From assembly GCA_013416795.1 (NCBI GenBank), contig RQSC01000011.1:174721-238720 (forward strand): a stretch of DNA of 64,000 nucleotides, in the 5' to 3' direction. The notes under the pieces were generated by a model that saw only the letters and a list, made by a program, of their open reading frames with translations, did not search any database and was not told the DNA's origin. This DNA comes from Prasinococcaceae sp. CCMP 1430. Taxonomy: Eukaryota > Plantae > Prasinodermophyta. Position 1 is the stretch's first letter, and the number at the start of each line of letters is the position of its first letter. The translations under genes and the position numbers were made by a program. Positions 22,032-57,006 of this stretch are shown here, one piece after another.

Positions 22032-22686
22032 CGTCGCAATGGTCGCGATGGCCCCGTGCTTGACACGATCGAGGGGGGCCGAGCGATGCCCCGCGGAGGG
22101 ACGGACGCGCCCAGCGCGAGCGCTCAGGCGCGGACGCGGCGCGAACCGTACGAACTGCGGCGCCTCTGCGCGCCGCGCGCGTCGCCGCGGCATTCAACGN
22201 NNNNNNNNNNNNNNNNNNNNNNNNNNNNNNNNNNNNNNNNNNNNNNNNNNNNNNNNNNNNNNNNNNNNNNNNNNNNNNNNNNNNNNNNNNNNNNNNNNNG
22301 CAGCGCCGCCGCGGACGCTGCGGCTGCTGCGCTCGCGCGGCGGCGCGCGCGAGGGTCGCCATGCTCGCCGAGCCGCTCTGTCGGAGGCCGGTCCGCCGGT
22401 CCGCTCGGTCAGGGGGGGTGTGAGGAAGGGGAGATGGTGGCGGCGCGGCGCGGGGCTGCGGTGTGGGGCGCGCAGTGTGCCCCCCAGCCCGCCCCCCATC
22501 CCCCCCCTGGCGCCCGCGAGCGGATAGAGCGATCACGCCGAGATCTTCGCGCCGTCGCAGCGCGAGCGACACACGCGCCCACATGCCGGTTGTTGGGTGA
22601 GCACAGTTCATAACCGCAAAAGTTTGCCAATTTCGGTACTTTTGAATGCGTTTTGACCTGCCAACTGCTCCACGCGTTTTGACGGC

Positions 22687-22759
22687 GCCCGCGTAGCTCA
22701 GTGGATAGAGCGTCGCTTTCCTAAGGCGAGGGTCGTGGGTTCGATCCCCATCGTGGGTG
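22687..22759 (+). tRNA. trnR-CCT: tRNA-Arg (anticodon CCT), intronless
   Basis: Acceptor stem GCCCGCG/CGTGGGT, D arm TAGCTCAGTGGATAGAGC, anticodon arm TCGCT-TTCCTAA-GGCGA, T arm GTGGG-TTCGATC-CCCAT. Confidence 0.96.
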
Positions 22760-22786: not shown

Positions 22787-23864
22787 GGCTTCTGCTCGTC
22801 CAATCAATCGCCTGCGTTCCCCCACGAACGATTCATTCGGTATGCGCCCGTTTTCGAAATTTCGTGCGGCCCCACCCCCCCGACGCGCGCACGCCCCACA
22901 CGCGGGGCGGCGCCCACGCACACACTCGCNNNNNNNNNNNNNNNNNNNNNNNNNNNNNNNNNNNNNNNNNNNNNNNNNNNNNNNNNNNNNNNNNNNNNNN
23001 NNNNNNNNNNNNNNNNNNNNNNNNNNNNNNNNNNNNNNNNNNNNNNNNNNNNNNNNNNNNNNNNNNNNNNNNNNNNNNNNNNNNNNNNNNNNNNNNNNNN
23101 NNNNNNNNNNNNNNNNNNNNNNNNNNNNNNNNNNNNNNNNNNNNNNNNNNNNNNNNNNNNNNNNNNNNNNNNNNNNNNNNNNNNNNNNNNNNNNNNNNNN
23201 NNNNNNNNNNNNNNNNNNNNNNNNNNNNNNNNNNNNNNNNNNNNNNNNNNNNNNNNNNNNNNNNNNNNNNNNNNNNNNNNNNNNNNNNNNNNNNNNNNNN
23301 NNNNNNNNNNNNNNNNNNNNNNNNNNNNNNNNNNNNNNNNNNNNNNNNNNNNNNNNNNNNNNNNNNNNNNNNNNNNNNNNNNNNNNNNNNNNNNNNNNNN
23401 NNNNNNNNNNNNNNNNNNNNNNNNNNNNNNNNNNNNNNNNNNNNNNNNNNNNNNNNNNNNNNNNNNNNNNNNNNNNNNNNNNNNNNNNNNNNNNNNNNNN
23501 NNNNNNNNNNNNNNNNNNNNNNNNNNNNNNNNNNNNNNNNNNNNNNNNNNNNNNNNNNNNNNNNNNNNNNNNNNNNNNNNNNNNNNNNNNNNNNNNNNNN
23601 NNNNNNNNNNNNNNNNNNNNNNNNNNNNNNNNNNNNNNNNNNNNNNNNNNNNNNNNNNNNNNNNNNNNNNNNNNNNNNNNNNNNNNNNNNNNNNNNNNNN
23701 NNNNNNNNNNNNNNNNNNNNNNNNNNNNNNNNNNNNNNNNNNNNNNNNNNNNNNNNNNNNNNNNNNNNNNNNNNNNNNNNNNNNNNNNNNNNNNNNNNNN
23801 NNNNNNNNNNNNNNNNNNNNNNNNNNNNNNNNNNNNNNNNNNNNNNNNNNNNNNNNNNNNNNNN

Positions 23865-27498: not shown

Positions 27499-28519
27499 CG
27501 CAAGCGCGCGCGCGGGCGGGAAGGATGGTGGTGGTCTGTGTATTCCTCCGTGTATTATAGCATCCACAGCGAGCGGCCGCGCGCGCCTCCGCGCCGCCGG
27601 CGCGACCGCGCGCCAGCGCTCAGCGCCTCCCGAGCGCANNNNNNNNNNNNNNNNNNNNNNNNNNNNNNNNNNNNNNNNNNNNNNNNNNNNNNNNNNNNNN
27701 NNNNNNNNNNNNNNNNNNNNNNNNNNNNNNNNNNNNNNNNNNNNNNNNNNNNNNNNNNNNNNNNNNNNNNNNNNNNNNNNNNNNNNNNNNNNNNNNNNNN
27801 NNNNNNNNNNNNNNNNNNNNNNNNNNNNNNNNNNNNNNNNNNNNNNNNNNNNNNNNNNNNNNNNNNNNNNNNNNNNNNNNNNNNNNNNNNNNNNNNNNNN
27901 NNNNNNNNNNNNNNNNNNNNNNNNNNNNNNNNNNNNNNNNNNNNNNNNNNNNNNNNNNNNNNNNNNNNNNNNNNNNNNNNNNNNNNNNNNNNNNNNNNNN
28001 NNNNNNNNNNNNNNNNNNNNNNNNNNNNNNNNNNNNNNNNNNNNNNNNNNNNNNNNNNNNNNNNNNNNNNNNNNNNNNNNNNNNNNNNNNNNNNNNNNNN
28101 NNNNNNNNNNNNNNNNNNNNNNNNNNNNNNNNNNNNNNNNNNNNNNNNNNNNNNNNNNNNNNNNNNNNNNNNNNNNNNNNNNNNNNNNNNNNNNNNNNNN
28201 NNNNNNNCGCTCGCCGAGTGGCGGGCGCGGCGGCGCGCGGCAGCCGCCAGCGCCAGCCGCCGCGCCAAAATGCGCTCCCCCATTTCGCGCGCGCGCTCTT
28301 CCGCAGGAACGTATCGAAACGAACCCGCGCGCCCTCAGAAATTCAGAATCATCACCACGACCGCGAGTACGAACGGCCTCCCCACGGGAGAGCGATACCG
28401 CCGCATGTTGGGGTCGGGGGTTGTTGTTGGGGTACCGTGTGTATGCGTAGGGTTGTGAATCGCCATCAAACCGCATCCACACAGCGCGGCATTATCCGCG
28501 CACGGCCCGCTACGCGCGT

Positions 28520-30188
28520 GTGGCTGCGCAGGTGTTGGGCAGAGGTGTGTGTGGGGGGGGGGACGCCACAGTGACGCGCGGGGGCGGGTTGACCGGCGGA
28601 CGCGCGAGGGGAAGGGACGCGCGGAGCGCGGTCGCCCCGGGGGCGGAAGGGCGGACGGGGGACGCTCCATCGGCGCGCCGACCTCCCCCTCCCCCCGCGA
28701 CGGAGTGGCTGCGCGCGACGTGCCCCGGCGCCGCCGACGGCGCCGAGGCGCTGCACGCGCGCAAGTTCGCGCACGGCCAGAGCAACCCCACCTTCCTGCT
28801 GTCCCTGCGCGGCGCGCGAGGCCGCGAGCTGCGCAAGCTCGTGCTGCGCAAGCAGCCGCAGGGCAAGCTGCTGCCGCGGGCGCACGCGGTCGACCGCGAG
28901 CACCGCGCGCAGGCCGCGCTGAGCCGCGGCTCGGACGTGCCCGTGGCGCGCCAGCTGGCGTACTGCGCCGACAGGGAGGTCGCAGGCGCGCCCTTTTACG
29001 TCATGGAGCACGTGGACGGCACCGTCTTCCTGGATAGGAGCCTGCCGTCGCTCGCGCCGGAGCAGCGCGGCGCCGTGTACGCGTCGCTTGCGCGCTGCCT
29101 GGCGTCCATCCACTCTGCGGACGTCGAGGCGATGGGCATGGTCGACTACGGCCGCGCGGACGCGTACTGCGCGCGCACGCTCGCGACGTGGAAGCGCCAG
29201 TACCTGCGCGACTGGGGCAGCGACCCCATGCCGGAGATGGTGCGGCTCGCGGCGTGGCTGGAGCGCAACGCGCCGCCGGGCGCGAGCGCGCGGATGCCGA
29301 AGCCGGCGCTCATCCACGGCGATTACCGCCTGGACAACGTCATCTTTGGCCTTGGCGCCCGCGGCTCGGCGCCGGAGGCGCTCGCGGTGCTCGACTGGGA
29401 GCTGTCGACGCTCGGCGACCCGATGGCGGACTTGGCGTACCTGTGCATGACGCTGTACCACGCGCCGCCCGGCGAGGTCCCACAGCCCGGCCGCGGGCGA
29501 CTGGCGCCGCCGGAGGGCGCGCCCGCTGAGGCCGAGCTGGTGGCCCAGTACTGCAGGCTTCGTGGCGTGGCCGCGCCCGACGAGCGCGCGTGGACGTACT
29601 ACCTCGCGCTCGCGTGCTACCGCATGGCGGCCATCTGCGCGGGCGTGCACGCGCGCTCGAAGCGCGGCAACGCGAGCGCAGCCAACGCCGAGATGGTGGG
29701 CCTGGCGGGCAAGGCGTACGCGGCGTACGCCCTGGGACTCATCGACAGCGTGCCGCCGCGCAAGTGGTACCAGAGCGAGCGCTCCGCCGCGCTGCTCGCA
29801 CGCGTGAAGGCGTTCATGGACGAGCACGTGTACCCCGCGGAGAAGGAGTTCATGGCGGAGGACGCGGCGCGCGTGGGCGAGGCCCGCTGGCGGCCGTTCC
29901 CGCTCATGGAGGAGCTGAAGGCGAAGGCGCGCGCCGCGGGGCTGTGGAACCTCTTCATGCCGAGCGACACGCGAGACCTCATCGCGCCCGGCATCCGCGA
30001 GGCTGTGGACTGCGGGCCCGGCCTCACAAACCTCGAGTACGCGCCGCTGTCGGAGGCCATGGGCGCGTGCCCGTTCGCCCCCGAGGTCTTCAACTGCAGC
30101 GCCCCCGACACGGGCAACATGGAGACCCTGGCGCGGTACGGCACGCACGAACAGCAGGAGCGCTGGCTCAGGCCGCTGCTCGAGGGCA

Positions 30189-30219
<31 letters not shown>

Positions 30220-31048
30220 CGCGGTGGCATCCAGCGACGCGACCAACATGCAGGCGGTCTGCGCGCACGACGCCGCCACGGACCAGCTCGTGCTCAGCGG
30301 CCGCAAGTGGTGGGCGAGCGGCGCGCTCGACCCCAGGTGCAAGCTGGCCATCTTCATGGGGCGCGAGGCCGACGCGGAGGGAGACGCGGCCAGGGGCAAG
30401 GCCGCGCGCGAGCCGCACCGTCGCCACTCGATGGTGCTGGTGCCGCTGCCGCACCCGCGCGTCAAGATGCTGCGGCCGATGACCGTGTTCGGCTACGACG
30501 ACGCGCCGCACGGGCACGCCGAGGTGGTTTTTGACGAGGTGCGCGTCCCGGTGGACAGCGTGCTGCTCGGGCGCGGCCGCGGCTTCGAGATCGCGCAGGG
30601 GCGGTTGGGGCCCGGGCGGCTACACCACTGCATGCGGGTGGTCGGCCTTGGCGAGCGCTCGCTGGCGATGCTCATCGAGCGCGGCGCGCAGCGCAAGGCC
30701 TTCGGGCGAAGCCTGCTTGCGCTCTCGGCGGACAAGATCGCCGACGCGCGCGTGCAACTCGACATGGCGCGCATGGTGGTGCTGTCGGCGGCGGCGGAGC
30801 TCGACCAGCACGGCAATAAGCGCGCCAGGGGCCCGCTCGCCATCGCCAAGGTCGCCGCCCCGCGCGCCGCGATCAGCGCGATCGACGCGGCCATCCAGGT
30901 GTTTGGCGGGTGCGGCGTCAGCCAGGACGCCCACCTCGCGTACTTTTACGCGGGTGCGCGCACGCTGCGCCTCGCCGACGGTCCCGACGAGGTGCACCTG
31001 CAGACCATCGCCAAGGTCGAGGCCGCGAAGCACAAGGCGCGCCTGTAA
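28520..31048 (+). CDS. ACAD11: ACAD10/ACAD11 (IBR3)-like APH-kinase + acyl-CoA dehydrogenase with PTS1 -ARL
   Basis: GQSNPTF, HAVDRE, HGDYRLDN and VLDWELSTLGDPMAD (kinase-like domain); FNCSAPDTGNME, MTEPAVASSDATN, GRLGPGRLHHCMR and LADGPDEVH (ACAD); ends KARL*. True ATG is unresolved. Confidence 0.93.
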
Positions 31049-31101
31049 AACCGACAATTTTTCCAGCCGAGCGGAGCGTACGATACACGCTGCTCCTCAG
31101 C

Positions 31102-32220
31102 TCACTCGAAGTACTCGTTGGTGAAGATCGCCTCCGCGCGCACCTGGTCCCTGGGGATCCGCTCACCCACGTCGCCCGTTCGCAGCCCGTCCAGTGTCGC
31201 TGACTGGCCCTTGACCGGCTGCCGCGAGTTCGCGTACGTCGTGAGCAAGCCCTCTTTGTCCAGCCAGTCCAGGTACGCATTCCAGCGCTCGGGGGTCTGG
31301 CGCCCCCATTTGCCGTCGCCATCTAGGTACGCCGGCCCGAGCTTGCGCTGTGAGCGCACGCACATCTCGAGATCGAGACTGTCGTCGCCGCAGAGCTCGC
31401 GCGCGCCTTCCACGAGCTCGCGCGCTGCCTCCTCCGGATGCGCGGCCGCCCATTCATAGCCTTCTGCGGTGGCCGCAAGGAAGGCGCGCACGTCGTCCGC
31501 GCGCGCGTCAAGCGTCGCGGGCGCCGCGACGAGGCACGGCGAGCATGCGCGCGGTATTCCGAAGTCTTCGAGCACGAAGTAATTCAGCTTCTGATCGTCT
31601 CCGCTCATCTCGGCCTGCACGCCCTCCCAGCACGTAAATACCCACGTGGCGTCGGCCTCGCCCTTGAGAACGGTGTCCCACAGGCCAAGCATGGGCTCGA
31701 CACACTCCTCGTAGTCGCCCGTGCCGCCGTCGGCCTGGATGAGGCGCTGGATGATGCGCCCCTCGAAGCGTGCAGCATAGCTGGCGTACCGTTTCCCGTC
31801 GAGCTCGCGCGGCCGGGCGATGCCCTTACGCGCGGCGACCGCCGACGTGTTGCGCTGGCAGAGAGCAGCAACGGCGGTGAGCGTGCGCTCGCGCCGGCCG
31901 CTGGCGCCGCACGCAGGCAAGTTCCAGCCTACCACCCCCTCCGGCGAGTTCAGCGCAAAGGTCGCCTCTCCGGCGGACGCCAGGTCGCACGGCGTGACGT
32001 ACTTACCGCCATCGCCGCCGCTCGTGTAGCTGCCCTTATAGCGCGCGTCTGCCGCGGAGATTATCTCCACGGCGAGCCCCCTCTTCGCGTACATCCCACG
32101 CCTCGCGGCGACGAAGAACCCGGTATGGTTCGTGTTGGGCGTCCAGTCGAGCGCGACGACCACCGGCGCGCCGCCCCCACCACCACCGCCACAGCCTCCG
32201 CCACCACCCGCCGGGGCCAT
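31102..32220 (-). CDS. NMT1/THI5/ThiY-like (SsuA/THI5 family) thiamine-pyrimidine-precursor-binding protein, intronless
   Basis: LDWTPNTNHTGFFVA..G.YAKRGLAVEI, LDGKRYASY, GEADATWVFTCWEGV, SPCLVA, VRAFLAATAEGYEWA and W..Y..WL..EGL are the characteristic ThiY/NMT1-like pattern. Confidence 0.88.
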   Translation of the reverse strand: MAPAGGGGGCGGGGGGGAPVVVALDWTPNTNHTGFFVAARRGMYAKRGLAVEIISAADARYKGSYTSGGDGGKYVTPCDLASAGEATFALNSPEGVVGWNLPACGASGRRERTLTAVAALCQRNTSAVAARKGIARPRELDGKRYASYAARFEGRIIQRLIQADGGTGDYEECVEPMLGLWDTVLKGEADATWVFTCWEGVQAEMSGDDQKLNYFVLEDFGIPRACSPCLVAAPATLDARADDVRAFLAATAEGYEWAAAHPEEAARELVEGARELCGDDSLDLEMCVRSQRKLGPAYLDGDGKWGRQTPERWNAYLDWLDKEGLLTTYANSRQPVKGQSATLDGLRTGDVGERIPRDQVRAEAIFTNEYFE

Positions 32221-32936
32221 GGCGGCGCCCCACGCGCTCGCTCAGAGCCTACGCTGTGGCAGGAGCCCCCCTGCCGAGCCAGCCGGCGAGCACATCTGCG
32301 ATGGCCGTGGCTGCGGCGACACGTCAACGGCGCCCGTGCGGGCAGCACCACGTGGGTTTGTGCGGGCACCGCCACGTGCGCGTTGGGTGGCTCGCGCGCC
32401 ACCGTTACGCGTAATGCGGCCTGCGTGATACGCGCGGCGATGAGTGCGTGACCTCCGAGAGACGACAGATCGATGAAAGTGTGGAACTTCCGCACGAAGC
32501 TTCCGCGCGGGCAGCGTACGCGCGCGCGCGGGAGGAAAGGGGTGGGGAGTGCAGGGGCGCCACACTGCGCACGTGCCGCGCGCTACCTGCGACAGGGTCT
32601 ACGTGTTGAGGTGCGTGGGGAGGCGCGCGGGGGGGGGATCCGGAGAGCGCTCGTTCGGCCCTTACGGCGCCACCAAATGTGCTCCGCGCATTTTTTGGGC
32701 GCGCGCACGTTGGCAGACAGGCCCTCGCCTGCCACAAAACCCTTCGCGTTCCGCGGGCCTCGTCCCATGGGCGCGCGCGCGCGCGCGGCGATGGTTCCCG
32801 CGCGCGGCATGCCGGGTGTGCTGCTGACGCCGAGCGCTGGCCATTTCTCCAATGTGTGCCCGCCGCTGTCAGGCTTGCGTCCGTGCTTGCCCCGAGTTCT
32901 CTCATTTTAGCGGCCTTTTCTTCTCACGCACGGAGG

Positions 32937-34633
32937 ATGGTGCCGCTCGTGATGATGTCGGCGCTTGTCGCGGCCGGCGCCGCCGGGGCGCACGCGGCGG
33001 ACACGTGCGGCGTGTGCCACATCCAGTACCTGCACAAGGATGCCTCAACGCCCGAGCCGGCTCTGATGGACACGGCGTGCAGCGCCTTCGCCTCGGGCTC
33101 GTGCTGCACGCCCGAGACGGCCATCCTCGCGTCATCGAACAGTGGCGCAGAGCTCTACGGGTGAGCACAGTGCCTGCCGCGCGCGCGCGCGTGCGTGCGC
33201 GATGATGCGACGCCATGACTCGCAAACCGAGCAGCTGGCTGACGAGACGCATGCGCGTTGTCGCCGCCACATATCTTGTTGCGCGCGTGCGATGTCCCCC
33301 TCCTTCTTCCGCTCATTCTTGCGCGCCGCCATCCGAACGCCATCAGACCGGAGTACCGCTGGGACCGCTGCGGCCCGCTCTCGCCCGAGTGCGAGCGCTT
33401 CTTCGTGGCGGAGGCATGCTGGTATGAGTGTGCCGTCGAGGCCGGCAAGTACAGGAAGCAGTACGTGGGGGGCGTTGTGTGTGTTTCGTGTGTCATGTGT
33501 GTGTGTATGTTGTGTCGTCGTCTGCGCGCGCGTGTTGGTGTGTGTGACTTTCCTCCACCTTGCCATCGCCACTCTCGCACCTTGAGCTTCGGTGCGACTG
33601 ATGACAGCGATCGTCCGAGCGACTCTGCCGGCCGTTGCGCCGGCGCGAGCGTTGCTGACGCAGTCACTCGCCATCGAGTAGGGGTGCCCGGGGCATGGAC
33701 ACGCTCAGCGGTCCCTCTGCCTCGGTGCTGAGATCATACCCTCAATGACCGGACCAGGGTAATGCCTGCGTCGGAAACTCAGCGCCCTCACGCGCGCGGA
33801 CTCCACAGTGGCAATCCGCTGGCCAGTGCTGCAGTACGCACGGCTTCTCCAAAGCCGGAGGCTGTGGAAAGCACGCCGTCGCGCTCGTGGACTGCAGCGC
33901 GGAGGCTCGAGGTGCTGATTGATTGATGTGCGCGCCTGCGCTGCCCCTCCCTTACGCCTTCGCTGTCGCCGCCGCCGCGCCTGCCGCTGCGCGCCACGCC
34001 ACGCGCGCAGTGCCGACTGTGCTGCCAGCGCCAACGGCACCGGCAACTCATGGCAGATCTACCACGCCCCGATGAAGGGCTCCTACTGCGACGAATTCTA
34101 CGAGGCCTGCAAGGCCGACTTCTTCTGCTCGAGCACCGGCACCGGCTCGTTTTTCGACACTGTCGCAGACGAGTGCGGCACGCTGGGCGACATCCAGTCG
34201 AACTGCAAGTCTTTCGAAGAGCTGTACGGCAGCGGCGAGGCGCTCTGCGAGAAGATGTGGGACGACAGCTTCATCTACGTGCCCACGACCAACTTCTCCG
34301 ACCCTGACCACAACGCATCGGACGCGTTCGGTGCGCCCTGCGCGCGTGCTCTGCGGCCTGATGCGCCGCATTGTGCCGCCGCTTGTTGAAGCGAAGGCGT
34401 AGTGCTGACGCGACGTCGCCCTTGCGACTCCCGCAGTGTGGGACTGGCCTGCGAACGAAACCAACCCAAATGCCGCCGTGCTCGATCATGTCGAGTGGCC
34501 CGACTCCTGCAATGAGTCGGAGCACGACGCGTGGGTGGAGTTCGACCTGAAGGCGCTCGAGGAGTGCCCGAACGTCATCTCGGACGGCACCACTGGCAAT
34601 GTGACCAACGCGACGGGCGGATACAACCCTTGA
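32937..34633 (+). CDS. Secreted folate-receptor/riboflavin-binding-protein-fold (FOLR-like) protein, 284 aa
   Basis: Exons 32937-33160, 33347-33460, 34011-34330 and 34437-34633 sum to 855 nt = 285 codons including the stop. Signal peptide, then C..F...SCCT, YRWDRCGPLSPECERFF..EACWYEC, W.....P....YCDEFYEAC and C..FEELYGSGEALCEKMWDDSF. Confidence 0.87.
33676..33780 (+). ncRNA. TPP (thi-box) riboswitch aptamer in intron 2 of the FOLR-like gene
   Basis: P1 GAGT/ACTC; P2 AGGGGT/ATACCCT; P3 CCGGGGCA/TGCCTCGG with P3a GGAC/GTCC; conserved GCTGAGA; P4 CCG/CGG; P5 CAGG/CCTG with GTAATG loop; conserved GCGT..GGAA. Confidence 0.93.
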
Positions 34634-37736: not shown

Positions 37737-38061
37737 GTGCAAGTGTGTGTGTGTGCGTGTGTGTGGTTGCGTGTGTGTGTGTGTGTGTGTGTACCCTGTG
37801 TGTGTGTGCGTGCACGGGTGCGCGGCTGCTTCAAGAGCAAGCGCCAAGAGCAAAGCCTCGCTCCTGCCATGCGGTGCTGTGCCTGCGTCCGCGAGCTGTG
37901 ATCCATCCATCGACACTCGCGCTGCGCGCCGCCGCGTCTGGCGTGCTCCCTTGCTTGCGAGACGGGCGGCGCTCCACGTGCGAGGCGTGGTGGTGCCGGC
38001 GGCTGCGGCCGAGCCCGAGCCCGCGTGTGTCGCATGTCGATACACACACACACACACGCAC

Positions 38062-38114
<53 letters not shown>

Positions 38115-38143
38115 CGAGCACACACACACACACACGCACACAA
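37737..38143. repeat. (GT)n and (CA)n microsatellites, including an inverted (CA)n-(TG)n-(CA)n array
   Basis: (GT)n at about 37737-37810; at 38041-38143 a (CA) tract, a long (TG) tract, then another (CA) tract. Confidence 0.9.
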
Positions 38144-39082
38144 ACATTCGCTTCGCTTCACTGCCTGCCGGTGGCGGTGGGGGTGGTGCGCTTGCATGCG
38201 CGCGCTCATGCGAGCGCGAAAGCGCCGGCGCGCCGCGTGCGCGCGAGCGCGCTCATCGAAACGCACTGACCGCCTGCATTGACACCCACACCGCAGGTCA
38301 CCGGATCACCCCACTCCGACTGGCCTTTTCGCCGCGGCCAGTGACGGGAGGATTGATTGAACGAAACGGGGCTCACCGCAGGGCGGATGACGGGGATTCG
38401 GATTCGGGTCTGTGCTTCGGCTCACTGCCCGAGGATGACCGGGATGGCGTATTGGGTTTTTCTGGGGGAGCTCGCGCGCGGCGCGCGGCGCTGCCGCCTG
38501 CACCGCGGCAGCCGAGGGGGACGGGAGGAGGGGAGGGGCTTCTTCCCCTCGGCCTGATTCTCACGCGCGCGCGCACGCGCGCAAGTGCTGGGTCGGCGTT
38601 CGTTCCCCTCGCCCTCTACGCCCACCCACCGGGGGGCCACAGCGCGCGCGCGCGCGCGCCGGGCGCGCCGGCGCACGCGCCGGGCCGGCCGCCGCTCTGC
38701 GCGCGCGCGCGCCAGCTAGCTGGGAGGGAGGAGGGGGCGCGGCGCGAGGGCGCGCTCGCCCCAGGTTGCTGGCTGGCGCCCTCGTCCGCCGAGGGTGAAT
38801 GTGCACCAACTCGTCGACGGACGCCCCCGTGCTGCCCGCTCAAACCGGTGGCACGAAGACGATATCGGGCGGCGCCGCGAGGGCGGTGTTGAAGTGGCTG
38901 CACGCTGCCGCGGCGGGCGCGGACGCGGCGAGTGCCGGCGACGCCGGCGCGGCGTCACGTCGCCCGCGGCGCGCACGGCGCCGCCCGGCACGCGGCCGAT
39001 GTCCTCGCGATGGTGGCAGAACGCGCGCCGACATCGCAGGACGGGCAGTGCCCCCGGCGCAACCGAGGGGGGCGCTCCAGGC

Positions 39083-43870: not shown

Positions 43871-44298
43871 CGCGCGCGCGCTCCCATGTGCCGCGCGTTC
43901 GACCTCCGATTCGAATCTCAATCCGACGTGCGCGCGCGGGCGGCCGCGCCGTGCCCCGCCGCCCGCCCGCGTGNNNNNNNNNNNNNNNNNNNNNNNNNNN
44001 NNNNNNNNNNNNNNNNNNNNNNNNNNNNNNNNNNNNNNNNNNGGGCGCGGCGGATCGGGCCGGGCCGCGCCGTGCGAGGCGCGGGCGCGCGGCCCTGGCC
44101 GGCGCTCTCGGTCTCGGTCTCGTCCTGGTTGACGCACAATGGACTGACTGTCGAAGGTCGACCTGAGGTTGCTACAGTACAAGCAGCACTAGTACTTCTA
44201 TCATACTATCCGTCCATCGCACCATGGTGGTCGACGAGCGCTAGAGCTAGCTAGAGAGAGTCATGGACTAGCTAGAGAGAGCGGCTGGGCTGCAGGGG

Positions 44299-56114: not shown

Positions 56115-57006
56115 GCCCGCGCGCCCGCCCGCCCCGGATCTGCGGGCCGGCAGCCGGCCACGCACATGCGCCGCAGCGCGCACGCGCTGTGGCCCACCGC
56201 ATCCCGCCTGCGCCCCCCCCTCCCGCCCCCTTCCAATCCCCGCGCCCCGCCCCTGCCGCACCGCCGCCCCTCCCTCCGCCCGCGGGGAGGCCGCCGTGCT
56301 TGCTGCGTGCGCCCCACATCGGGATCGAGGCGCGCCACCGCATTCATGGTTTTTCGAATTCGCGTGGTATCGTCGCCGGCGGCGCCAGCCTCGCTCGCGC
56401 GCGCGCGCGGCGCGCGCGCGCGCGCGCGGGGGAACCAGAACCGGAACCATTTCTTCTCCGCGCTTCTGTCTCGGCGATGCGGGTGCGGATTGAAAGACGC
56501 GGAAGCCGGGCATTTCGACGCGCGGGTGCGTGTCGCCCTTCGAGTTTTCGCGCGCGCGCGCGCGCGCNNNNNNNNNNNNNNNNNNNNNNNNNNNNNNNNN
56601 NNNNNNNNNNNNNNNNNNNNNNNNNNNNNNNNNNNNNNNNNNNNNNNNNNNNNNNNNNNNNNNNNNNNNNNNNNNNNNNNNNNNNNNNNNNNNNNNNNNN
56701 NNNNNNNNNNNNNNNNNNNNNNNNNNNNNNNNNNNNNNNNNNNNNNNNNNNNNNNNNNNNNNNNNNNNNNNNNNNNNNNNNNNNNNNNNNNNNNNNNNNN
56801 NNNNNNNNNNNNNNNNNNNNNNNNNNNNNNNNNNNNNNNNNNNNNNNNNNNNNNNNNNNNNNNNNNNNNNNNNNNNNNNNNNNNNNNNNNNNNNNNNNNN
56901 NNNNNNNNNNNNNNNNNNNNNNNNNNNNNNNNNNNNNNNNNNNNNNNNNNNNNNNNNNNNNNNNNNNNNNNNNNNNNNNNNNNNNNNNNNNNNNNNNNNN
57001 NNNNNN

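Follow-up and report, generated by a model that had tools for sequence, protein, structure and literature searches.

Riboswitches that bind thiamine pyrophosphate (TPP) were linked to Folate_rec-family genes in 2014 by McRose et al., who named the family ATS1 (Algal Thiamine Sensitive 1; PMC4260697). ATS1 riboswitches were described from Micromonas RCC299, CCMP2099 and NEPCC29 and from Bigelowiella natans, with thiamine-responsive expression in RCC299 (PMC4260697), and Llavero-Pasquina et al. (2022) described diatom FOLR genes with TPP aptamers in Halamphora and Fistulifera (PMC9544697). The published ATS1 aptamers (Table S2 of PMC4260697) and diatom FOLR aptamers (PMC9544697) all lie in the 3′ untranslated region (UTR); TPP riboswitches in a coding intron ('mid-gene') are known from THIC of Chlamydomonas, Volvox and Pyramimonas (PMC4260697). 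Here we analysed a stretch of 64,000 nucleotides (nt) from Prasinococcaceae sp. CCMP 1430 (assembly GCA_013416795.1, contig RQSC01000011.1, positions 174,721 to 238,720), referred to below as the window, which carries a TPP aptamer inside intron 2 of an ATS1/FOLR-like gene of Prasinoderma coloniale. Neither the mechanism nor the pairing of gene and switch is new, and the novelty implied in a preliminary description of this DNA does not extend to them, TPP riboswitches on the ATS1/FOLR-like family having been published in 2014 and 2022. What is new is the lineage, Prasinodermophyta, and the combination of an ATS1-type gene with a coding-intron aptamer. We propose that the element is a functional TPP OFF switch acting through splicing of intron 2, and put the probability of this reading at roughly 0.65. 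All positions are those of the window and, unless stated otherwise, refer to its forward (+) strand.

The RF00059 covariance model (TPP, THI element) aligned end to end (model positions 1-105 of 105) with 33670-33793 on the forward strand at 42.9 bits. The E-value was 4.8e-7 in a search of 651 nt and 4.7e-5 for both strands of the window (128 kb) and all 4227 Rfam families, and an Rfam scan in E-value mode returned this stretch as the sole TPP match in the window. The score lies below the RF00059 gathering score of 54.3, and a default Rfam scan at that cut-off reported no TPP match in the window, only a tRNA. The gathering score is Rfam's curated annotation cut-off and not a biological property; judging from the cmscan alignment, the shortfall arises because P3 carries a 33-nt insertion and P3a is deleted. 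In eukaryotic TPP aptamers P3 spans 7-115 nt and P3a is mostly entered as 'np' (McRose 2014, Table S2, PMC4260697). The preliminary description had placed a TPP aptamer here and had proposed an RF00059 search as a check, which gave a significant, full-length match even though it fell under the gathering score.

Counted from P1 to P1, the aptamer comprises 105 nt (33676..33780) and has the P1-P5 architecture, with two sensor arms meeting at a three-way junction. All 34 pairs of a canonical structure written by hand are standard in the window (fold energy −39.8 kcal/mol), and over four haplotypes 99.3% of the cells of this model were paired, versus 33-46% when the model was slid. P1 joins GAGU to ACUC (33676-79/33777-80), and in the hand-built structure P2 is formed by 33680-83/33739-42 plus the pair U33685-A33736. 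For P3 the preliminary description had reported an extra branched hairpin; RNAfold and the hand structure instead give one long, imperfect and unbranched hairpin of 43 nt (33686..33728), which contains the 33-nt insertion relative to the Rfam model. The pyrimidine-sensor motif CUGAGA occupies 33728..33733. According to the cmscan alignment the pyrophosphate-sensor arm P4-P5 (33749..33774) reads, in order, CCGG, AC, CAGG, GUAAUG, CCUG, CG and UCGG: P4 is CCGG/UCGG (33749-52/33771-74), P5 is CAGG/CCUG (33755-58/33765-68), loop L5 is GUAAUG with its UAAU (33759-64), and the CG after CCUG (33769-70) belongs to the GCG bulge. The P5/L5 sequence, CAGGGUAAUGCCUG, appears to match the plant type, as in Arabidopsis. 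No ligand-contact motif is missing: the sequence has CUGAGA, the GCG bulge and a loop with UAAU. The thi-box landmarks in order and the GAGU/ACUC P1 of the preliminary description are thus recovered, and the cmscan alignment displays changes from the consensus in P4 (CCGG/UCGG for CCUg/uAGG) and in P5. Taken in isolation, the 121-nt piece had an unremarkable free-energy z-score (−1.48), and the unconstrained minimum-free-energy fold showed other pairings in place of P1 and P2; it is therefore the covariance model, and not thermodynamics, that carries the case for the aptamer. Going by its sequence, the element at 33676-33780 is an intact eukaryote-type TPP aptamer, and TPP binding is predicted.

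Three successive open reading frame (ORF) pieces of the surrounding gene matched Folate_rec (PF03024) when searched exon by exon in Pfam, covering profile positions 1-43, 48-84 and 86-162 with scores of 19.7, 35.8 and 51.5 bits and running contiguously over positions 1-162. An exhaustive HMMER search with exon 3 yielded a 100%-identical protein of P. coloniale (UniRef A0A7R9Y0Y9; MMETSP Transcript_2982), whose cluster includes the genome-annotation model PRCOL_00002958-RA (P0272, 284 amino acids (aa)). The spliced translation of the window gene is identical to this protein. Its homologues in the PDB are folate receptors alpha and beta, riboflavin-binding protein and Juno (E 1e-14 to 1e-8), and by eye it has a signal-peptide-like N-terminus, MVPLVMMSALVAAGAAGAHA, and no hydrophobic tail. 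On these homologies the host gene is ATS1/FOLR-like and of the same Pfam family as Micromonas ATS1; the earlier statement that it does not encode a thiamine-biosynthesis enzyme was correct. Micromonas ATS1 was not identified among the cluster representatives, in which the only named algal relatives were those of Cymbomonas and Karlodinium, and word-indexed protein searches with P0124 (the homologue from a related species, introduced below) and with exon 3 returned Prasinoderma clusters only. Among the best remote matches of exon 3 (P0123, P0125) were proteins of amphioxus (Branchiostoma) in which 4-7 Folate_rec domains stand in tandem, together with the homologues of the dinoflagellate Karlodinium and of Cymbomonas; at this level the algal FOLR-like proteins were not obviously nearer to each other than to the animal ones.

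The exon junctions were taken from an environmental mRNA (L011, 1136 nt) aligned to the window. The alignment places a 5′-UTR exon, its 5′ end not defined, at 32572..32610, a 5′-UTR intron of 262 nt (GTGCGT...CAG) at 32611-32872, exon 1 with the ATG at 32937 and, by Pfam, the start of the Folate_rec domain at 32873..33160, exon 2 (profile 48-84) at 33347..33460, exon 3 (profile 86-162) at 34011..34330 and exon 4 with the stop codon, also supported by the P0272 translation, at 34437..34633. Intron 2 (33461..34010) is a phase 2 intron of 550 nt (GTACGT...CAG); its removal is defined by the L011 junction aggaagca|tgccgac and by the step of the Pfam profile from 84 to 86 across it. The aptamer lies in sense orientation within this intron, between coding exons, and the spliced L011 thus proves the intronic location that the preliminary description had claimed. 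A gene of a related species (L009, encoding P0124; 66% aa identity to exon 3 and 67% to P0272 overall) reads through three intron positions, which validates the exon junctions independently. This L009 gene has an apparent intron further 5′ (..cctag|gatgcg).

Productive and non-productive isoforms of the aptamer-bearing gene both exist. L011, with its exact exon 2|exon 3 junction, is a productive environmental mRNA. L010 (910 nt) is a poly(A)-ended transcript of a relative and encodes P0271, which shares 73% aa identity with P0272. Its exon 3-exon 4 junction is seamless, so that intron 3 has been removed, and upstream of exon 3 it retains at least 188 nt of sequence alignable to the 3′ third of window intron 2, including the conserved blocks GACTGCA, CTGATTGA and GCGCGCCTGCGCTG. 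L010 is therefore an intron-2-containing, intron-3-spliced and polyadenylated RNA; its 5′ end lies ∼12 nt 3′ of the position equivalent to P1, short of the aptamer. A second instance comes from culture. The MMETSP ORF P0121, annotated 'type:complete', has 151 aa and takes the first Met in exon 3 as its start. In TransDecoder output 'complete' implies an in-frame stop upstream, and the MMETSP cultures are assumed to have been vitamin-replete. Six isoforms were modelled, and every one containing intron 2 sequence (acceptor 33681 or 33782, a poison exon ending at 33833, or full retention) yielded a complete 151-aa ORF identical to P0121, which the productive mRNA model did not reproduce. The MMETSP ORF therefore stems from a non-productive isoform. 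Non-productive isoforms accumulate both in culture and in the sea.

The stop codons and splice signals of intron 2 define what such isoforms can encode. If the intron is fully retained, 112 native residues are followed by 90 extra ones before translation stops at UGA 33729-33731 within CUGAGA. Joining of the normal donor to the AG at 33680-33681 keeps 33682-34010 and gives a product of 134 aa, from whose length we derived by hand the stop at UGA 33746-33748. This AG, a candidate alternative 3′ splice acceptor, opens the 5′ strand of P2, AGGG (33680..33683; A33680 G G G33683), the sequence that in green algae and plants holds the alternative acceptor of experimentally determined mechanism (PMC9544697). 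By analogy the P2 acceptor may also be used at the P. coloniale locus. A candidate alternative 5′ splice site, GCAGTACG (33831..33838, GT at 33834), is an exact copy of the authentic donor 8-mer at 33458-33465; it is invariant in the population copies and not conserved in the related species represented by L010. A poison exon closed by it (33682-33833, 152 nt) would contain a stop, and its use as a donor is speculative. The sole stop-free alternative, an in-frame cassette of 51 nt (33783-33833), was not accepted as the regulatory outcome, since L010 does not conserve its donor. Further downstream, a branch-site-like CTGAT (33915..33919) lies in a block conserved with L010; the ∼95 nt that separate it from the downstream 3′ splice site of intron 2 are free of AG. 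The TGA within CTGAT (33916-33918) is an in-frame stop upstream of exon 3 (ORF 33919-34389).

In the switch that we propose, the whole 550-nt intron 2 would be removed at low TPP, giving the mRNA for the 284-aa folate-receptor-fold protein, whose presumed role in a vitamin B1 (thiamine) auxotroph is the capture of thiamine or one of its precursors. TPP binding at the aptamer would divert splicing, most likely to the AG acceptor within P2 (33680-33681), as in Chlamydomonas and plants; alternatively, intron 2 would stay in. Every diverted isoform would meet a stop, UGA 33729-31 or 33746-48, either inside the aptamer or shortly beyond it, and no functional protein would be made. That TPP binds, that it turns the gene off and which alternative site is used are inferred. 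The direction is suggested by the non-productive isoform in the culture transcriptome, by the induction of Micromonas ATS1, which rose 80-fold when the medium contained no thiamine and >100-fold in treatments with precursors, likewise without thiamine (PMC4260697), and by the B1 auxotrophy of P. coloniale, in which the enzymes of thiamine synthesis are missing apart from the last phosphorylation step (PMC7455551).

Variation of the aptamer was assessed in 18 metagenomic copies (L008, L012-L028), mostly from Tara Oceans, which are 96-99% identical. The aptamer core is identical in all 18, and the copies fall into four aptamer haplotypes. Four variants were seen among the 19 copies formed by these and the window, namely G33693A, a P3-extension mismatch, A33701G in a P3 bulge, G33764U at the last base of L5 and U33771C, which turns a G.U pair of P4 into G-C. 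All are at tolerated positions and outside the binding core; the GCG bulge and CUGAGA are invariant, and so is L5 up to its last base. The 5′ part of intron 2 contains a (GT)n microsatellite (33476-33510) whose length differs by up to ∼20 nt among the metagenomic copies and which accounts for most of the apparent variability of that part.

Several observations weigh against the proposed switch and bear on the explanations that compete with it. The Rfam score below the gathering cut-off and the weak folding z-score (−1.48) would suit a chance resemblance to a thi-box in a GC-rich intron, but with 128 kb and 4227 families taken into account the E-value is still 4.7e-5, and the match spans the whole model, has all invariant motifs in their proper order and sits in exactly the gene family known for TPP aptamers (PMC4260697, PMC9544697). 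Chance resemblance is thereby effectively refuted. Duplex energies for pairing between the 3′ half of the aptamer and the donor sites were within background (ranks 0.78 and 0.11), giving no sign of donor masking by the P4/P5 strand in the plant or fungal style, and when a 660-nt pre-mRNA with the whole of intron 2 was folded with the aptamer constrained versus free, the splice signals did not clearly change. As none of the transcripts extends to the aptamer, they are no guide to the alternative site, and they stem from uncontrolled thiamine conditions. A competing explanation is plain regulated intron retention, in which TPP binding makes intron 2 'detained' and no alternative splice site is involved; the intron might, for example, be compacted or occluded, with the distant branch site and donor left unpaired, and translation would end at the UGA of CUGAGA. 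L010 keeps intron sequence up to its own 5′ end, the downstream candidate donor (33834) is not conserved in it, the full-retention model reproduces P0121, and the first in-frame stop falls within the invariant CUGAGA. Against this, the characterised green-lineage riboswitches use the P2 AG acceptor (PMC9544697), and that AG is present in P. coloniale. We regard regulated retention as unlikely, though a serious candidate.

The preliminary description had taken compensatory changes as a sign of selection on the fold; within the lineage we found no double compensatory change (four haplotypes; shuffles were uninformative), and the aptamer is variable at 4 of 105 sites (3.8%) versus 9 of 230 (3.9%) in the adjoining intron, indicating no extra constraint. 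Selection on the fold is therefore not demonstrable at this shallow depth. The related gene in L009 lacks introns at all three P. coloniale positions, and no TPP match was found in the 1189 nt of L009, which include 230 nt upstream and 190 nt downstream of the gene; a riboswitch intron is thus not shared by the whole clade. In diatoms, aptamers whose sequence quality was equal regulated nothing, those of PtTHIC failing every regulation test in spite of intact motifs (PMC9544697). The missing intron, the lack of excess conservation and the diatom precedent would all agree with an aptamer that is conserved in sequence but no longer regulatory, as a relic or in some other use, the intron-containing transcripts then being incompletely processed RNA. 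Set against this are the 19 copies in which every core nucleotide is intact and variants occur at tolerated positions, the green-lineage AGGG acceptor that the diatom aptamers lack, the strong thiamine response of the homologous gene family in Micromonas (PMC4260697), and poly(A)+ RNA containing intron 2 but spliced for intron 3, seen twice independently (L010 and P0121). A non-regulatory aptamer is accordingly improbable in our view, and a functional OFF switch through splicing remains the preferred reading.

A protein-guided scan of JGI metagenomes with an ATS1 alignment gave 126 pattern matches, none of which was confirmed. A DNA-pattern scan for a plant-type aptamer core returned at least 120 loci, with no Folate_rec coding sequence among the matches listed; the pattern was too general, and the loci listed came, by their contig names, apparently mostly from non-marine samples.

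A divergent, intronless NMT1/THI5-like gene (SSUA/THI5-like, ThiY-like; PF09084, E 2.6e-42) lies on the reverse strand at 31102..32220. With the host gene's 5′-UTR exon beginning at 32572 or earlier, only ∼350 nt separate it from the ATG of this neighbour, and because of this short distance the two genes probably share a bidirectional promoter region. The whole-window Rfam scan found no TPP match in or beside the NMT1-like gene, which is context and not part of the switch. It is also subject to presence/absence polymorphism: a 1.34-kb segment (window 31095-32436) is missing in three metagenomic copies (L017-L019), in which the flanks join cleanly (...CACGCTGCT|TTGAGTGCGTG), and present in a fourth (L020). 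A 'divergent thiamine gene pair' is thus not fixed in the population. Another NMT1-like copy with 91% nt and 94% aa identity is found in L001/L002 between a cytochrome b5 desaturase and an RNB-domain gene, with DNA homology confined to the coding sequence ± ∼15 nt, and the NMT1-like gene may have been relocated recently to its place beside the riboswitch gene. The contigs of the neighbour's closest homologues (L001-L007) showed other neighbours, no TPP matches and no orthologous locus. Convergent with the NMT1-like gene, an ORF of 842 aa (28520-31048, forward strand) presumably encodes an aminoglycoside-phosphotransferase-like and acyl-CoA dehydrogenase fusion (ACAD10/11-like), as its translation alone suggests.

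Elsewhere in the window, runs of N mark assembly gaps at 22200-22299, 22930-23864, 27639-28207, 43974-44042 and 56568-57006, and these gaps account for the bins of seemingly low GC in the composition profile, among them an apparent island at 22-24 kb. The tRNA (61.6 bits) lies between two of them at 22687-22759. Sub-threshold Rfam matches to mir-297, mir-466, mir-3149 and snoRNA models (38016-38229, both strands) were discarded as artefacts of a long (GT)n/(CA)n tract.

We found no mention of a riboswitch in Prasinoderma in the literature searched, nor in the genome paper (PMC7455551). The P. coloniale aptamer extends TPP riboswitches to the third and deepest-branching green-plant phylum and indicates that the link between TPP sensing and the folate-receptor-like ATS1, itself unexplained, is either old or recurrent. 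As the aptamer interrupts coding sequence, the balance of productive and stop-containing isoforms offers a clean read-out of ATS1 switching, and with it an approach to the question left by the negative diatom results, namely whether ATS1 riboswitches really switch. ATS1 is among the best candidates for a protein that captures B1 or its precursors with high affinity in marine picoplankton, and this role becomes testable with a splicing-type switch on the gene in a B1 auxotroph that is axenic, sequenced and in culture. A bolder and rather doubtful extension is that the aptamer-bearing intron is a relocatable regulatory cassette. It is prompted by the occurrence of a green-type aptamer (AGGG, no P3a) in an ATS1 coding intron in Prasinodermophyta and in the ATS1 3′ UTR in Mamiellophyceae, and by a relative with 66-67% protein identity in which both aptamer and intron are absent. 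Were this true, riboswitch-introns would behave as units in gain, loss or relocation, and splicing-type TPP control would be older than the Chlorophyta/Streptophyta split. Splicing control has been suggested to have 'emerged later' (PMC4260697); the presence, in the green phylum that diverged first, of an intron aptamer with a green-type acceptor is a mild argument against that suggestion.

Among the described systems that act through splicing, the locus shares with NMT1 of Neurospora crassa an intronic aptamer and, in the switch proposed here, a choice of splice sites that would lead to non-productive mRNAs at high TPP, with the difference that the Neurospora aptamer lies in a UTR intron and the P. 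coloniale intron interrupts coding sequence. The Neurospora choice, in the 2007 work of Cheah and colleagues, is reportedly one between two donors in the 5′-UTR intron, by which upstream ORFs are created. The plant THIC riboswitch of the 3′ UTR is said, after Wachter and colleagues in 2007, to govern 3′-end processing and mRNA stability via a UTR intron whose donor is masked by P4/P5 pairing, whereas no such pairing rises above background in P. coloniale; the two have in common an AG acceptor in P2 (PMC9544697). The diatom FOLR aptamers likewise reside on a Folate_rec gene, often one with a signal peptide, yet diatom aptamers are all in the 3′ UTR, possess P3a and have a P2 'GCGG' without acceptor, and the one tested (PtTHIC) did not switch (PMC9544697). 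The THIC riboswitches of Chlamydomonas reinhardtii, Volvox and Pyramimonas share with the locus an aptamer in a coding intron, a P2 'AGGG' containing the AG and isoforms with premature stops (Croft et al. 2007, via PMC4260697 and PMC9544697); their host is the hydroxymethylpyrimidine phosphate (HMP-P) synthase, whereas that of P. coloniale is a predicted secreted binding-protein homologue in an alga without a thiamine synthesis pathway. With the ATS1 genes of McRose et al. (PMC4260697) the P. coloniale gene shares the Folate_rec (PF03024) domain, a eukaryote-type aptamer with a long P3 and no P3a, hosts that are B1 auxotrophs without THIC or THI4, and an SSUA/THI5-like (NMT1) gene in the thiamine-responsive set. 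It differs in lineage, Prasinodermophyta in place of Mamiellophyceae and Rhizaria, and in the position of the aptamer, which there lies in the 3′ UTR and here in an intron between coding exons.

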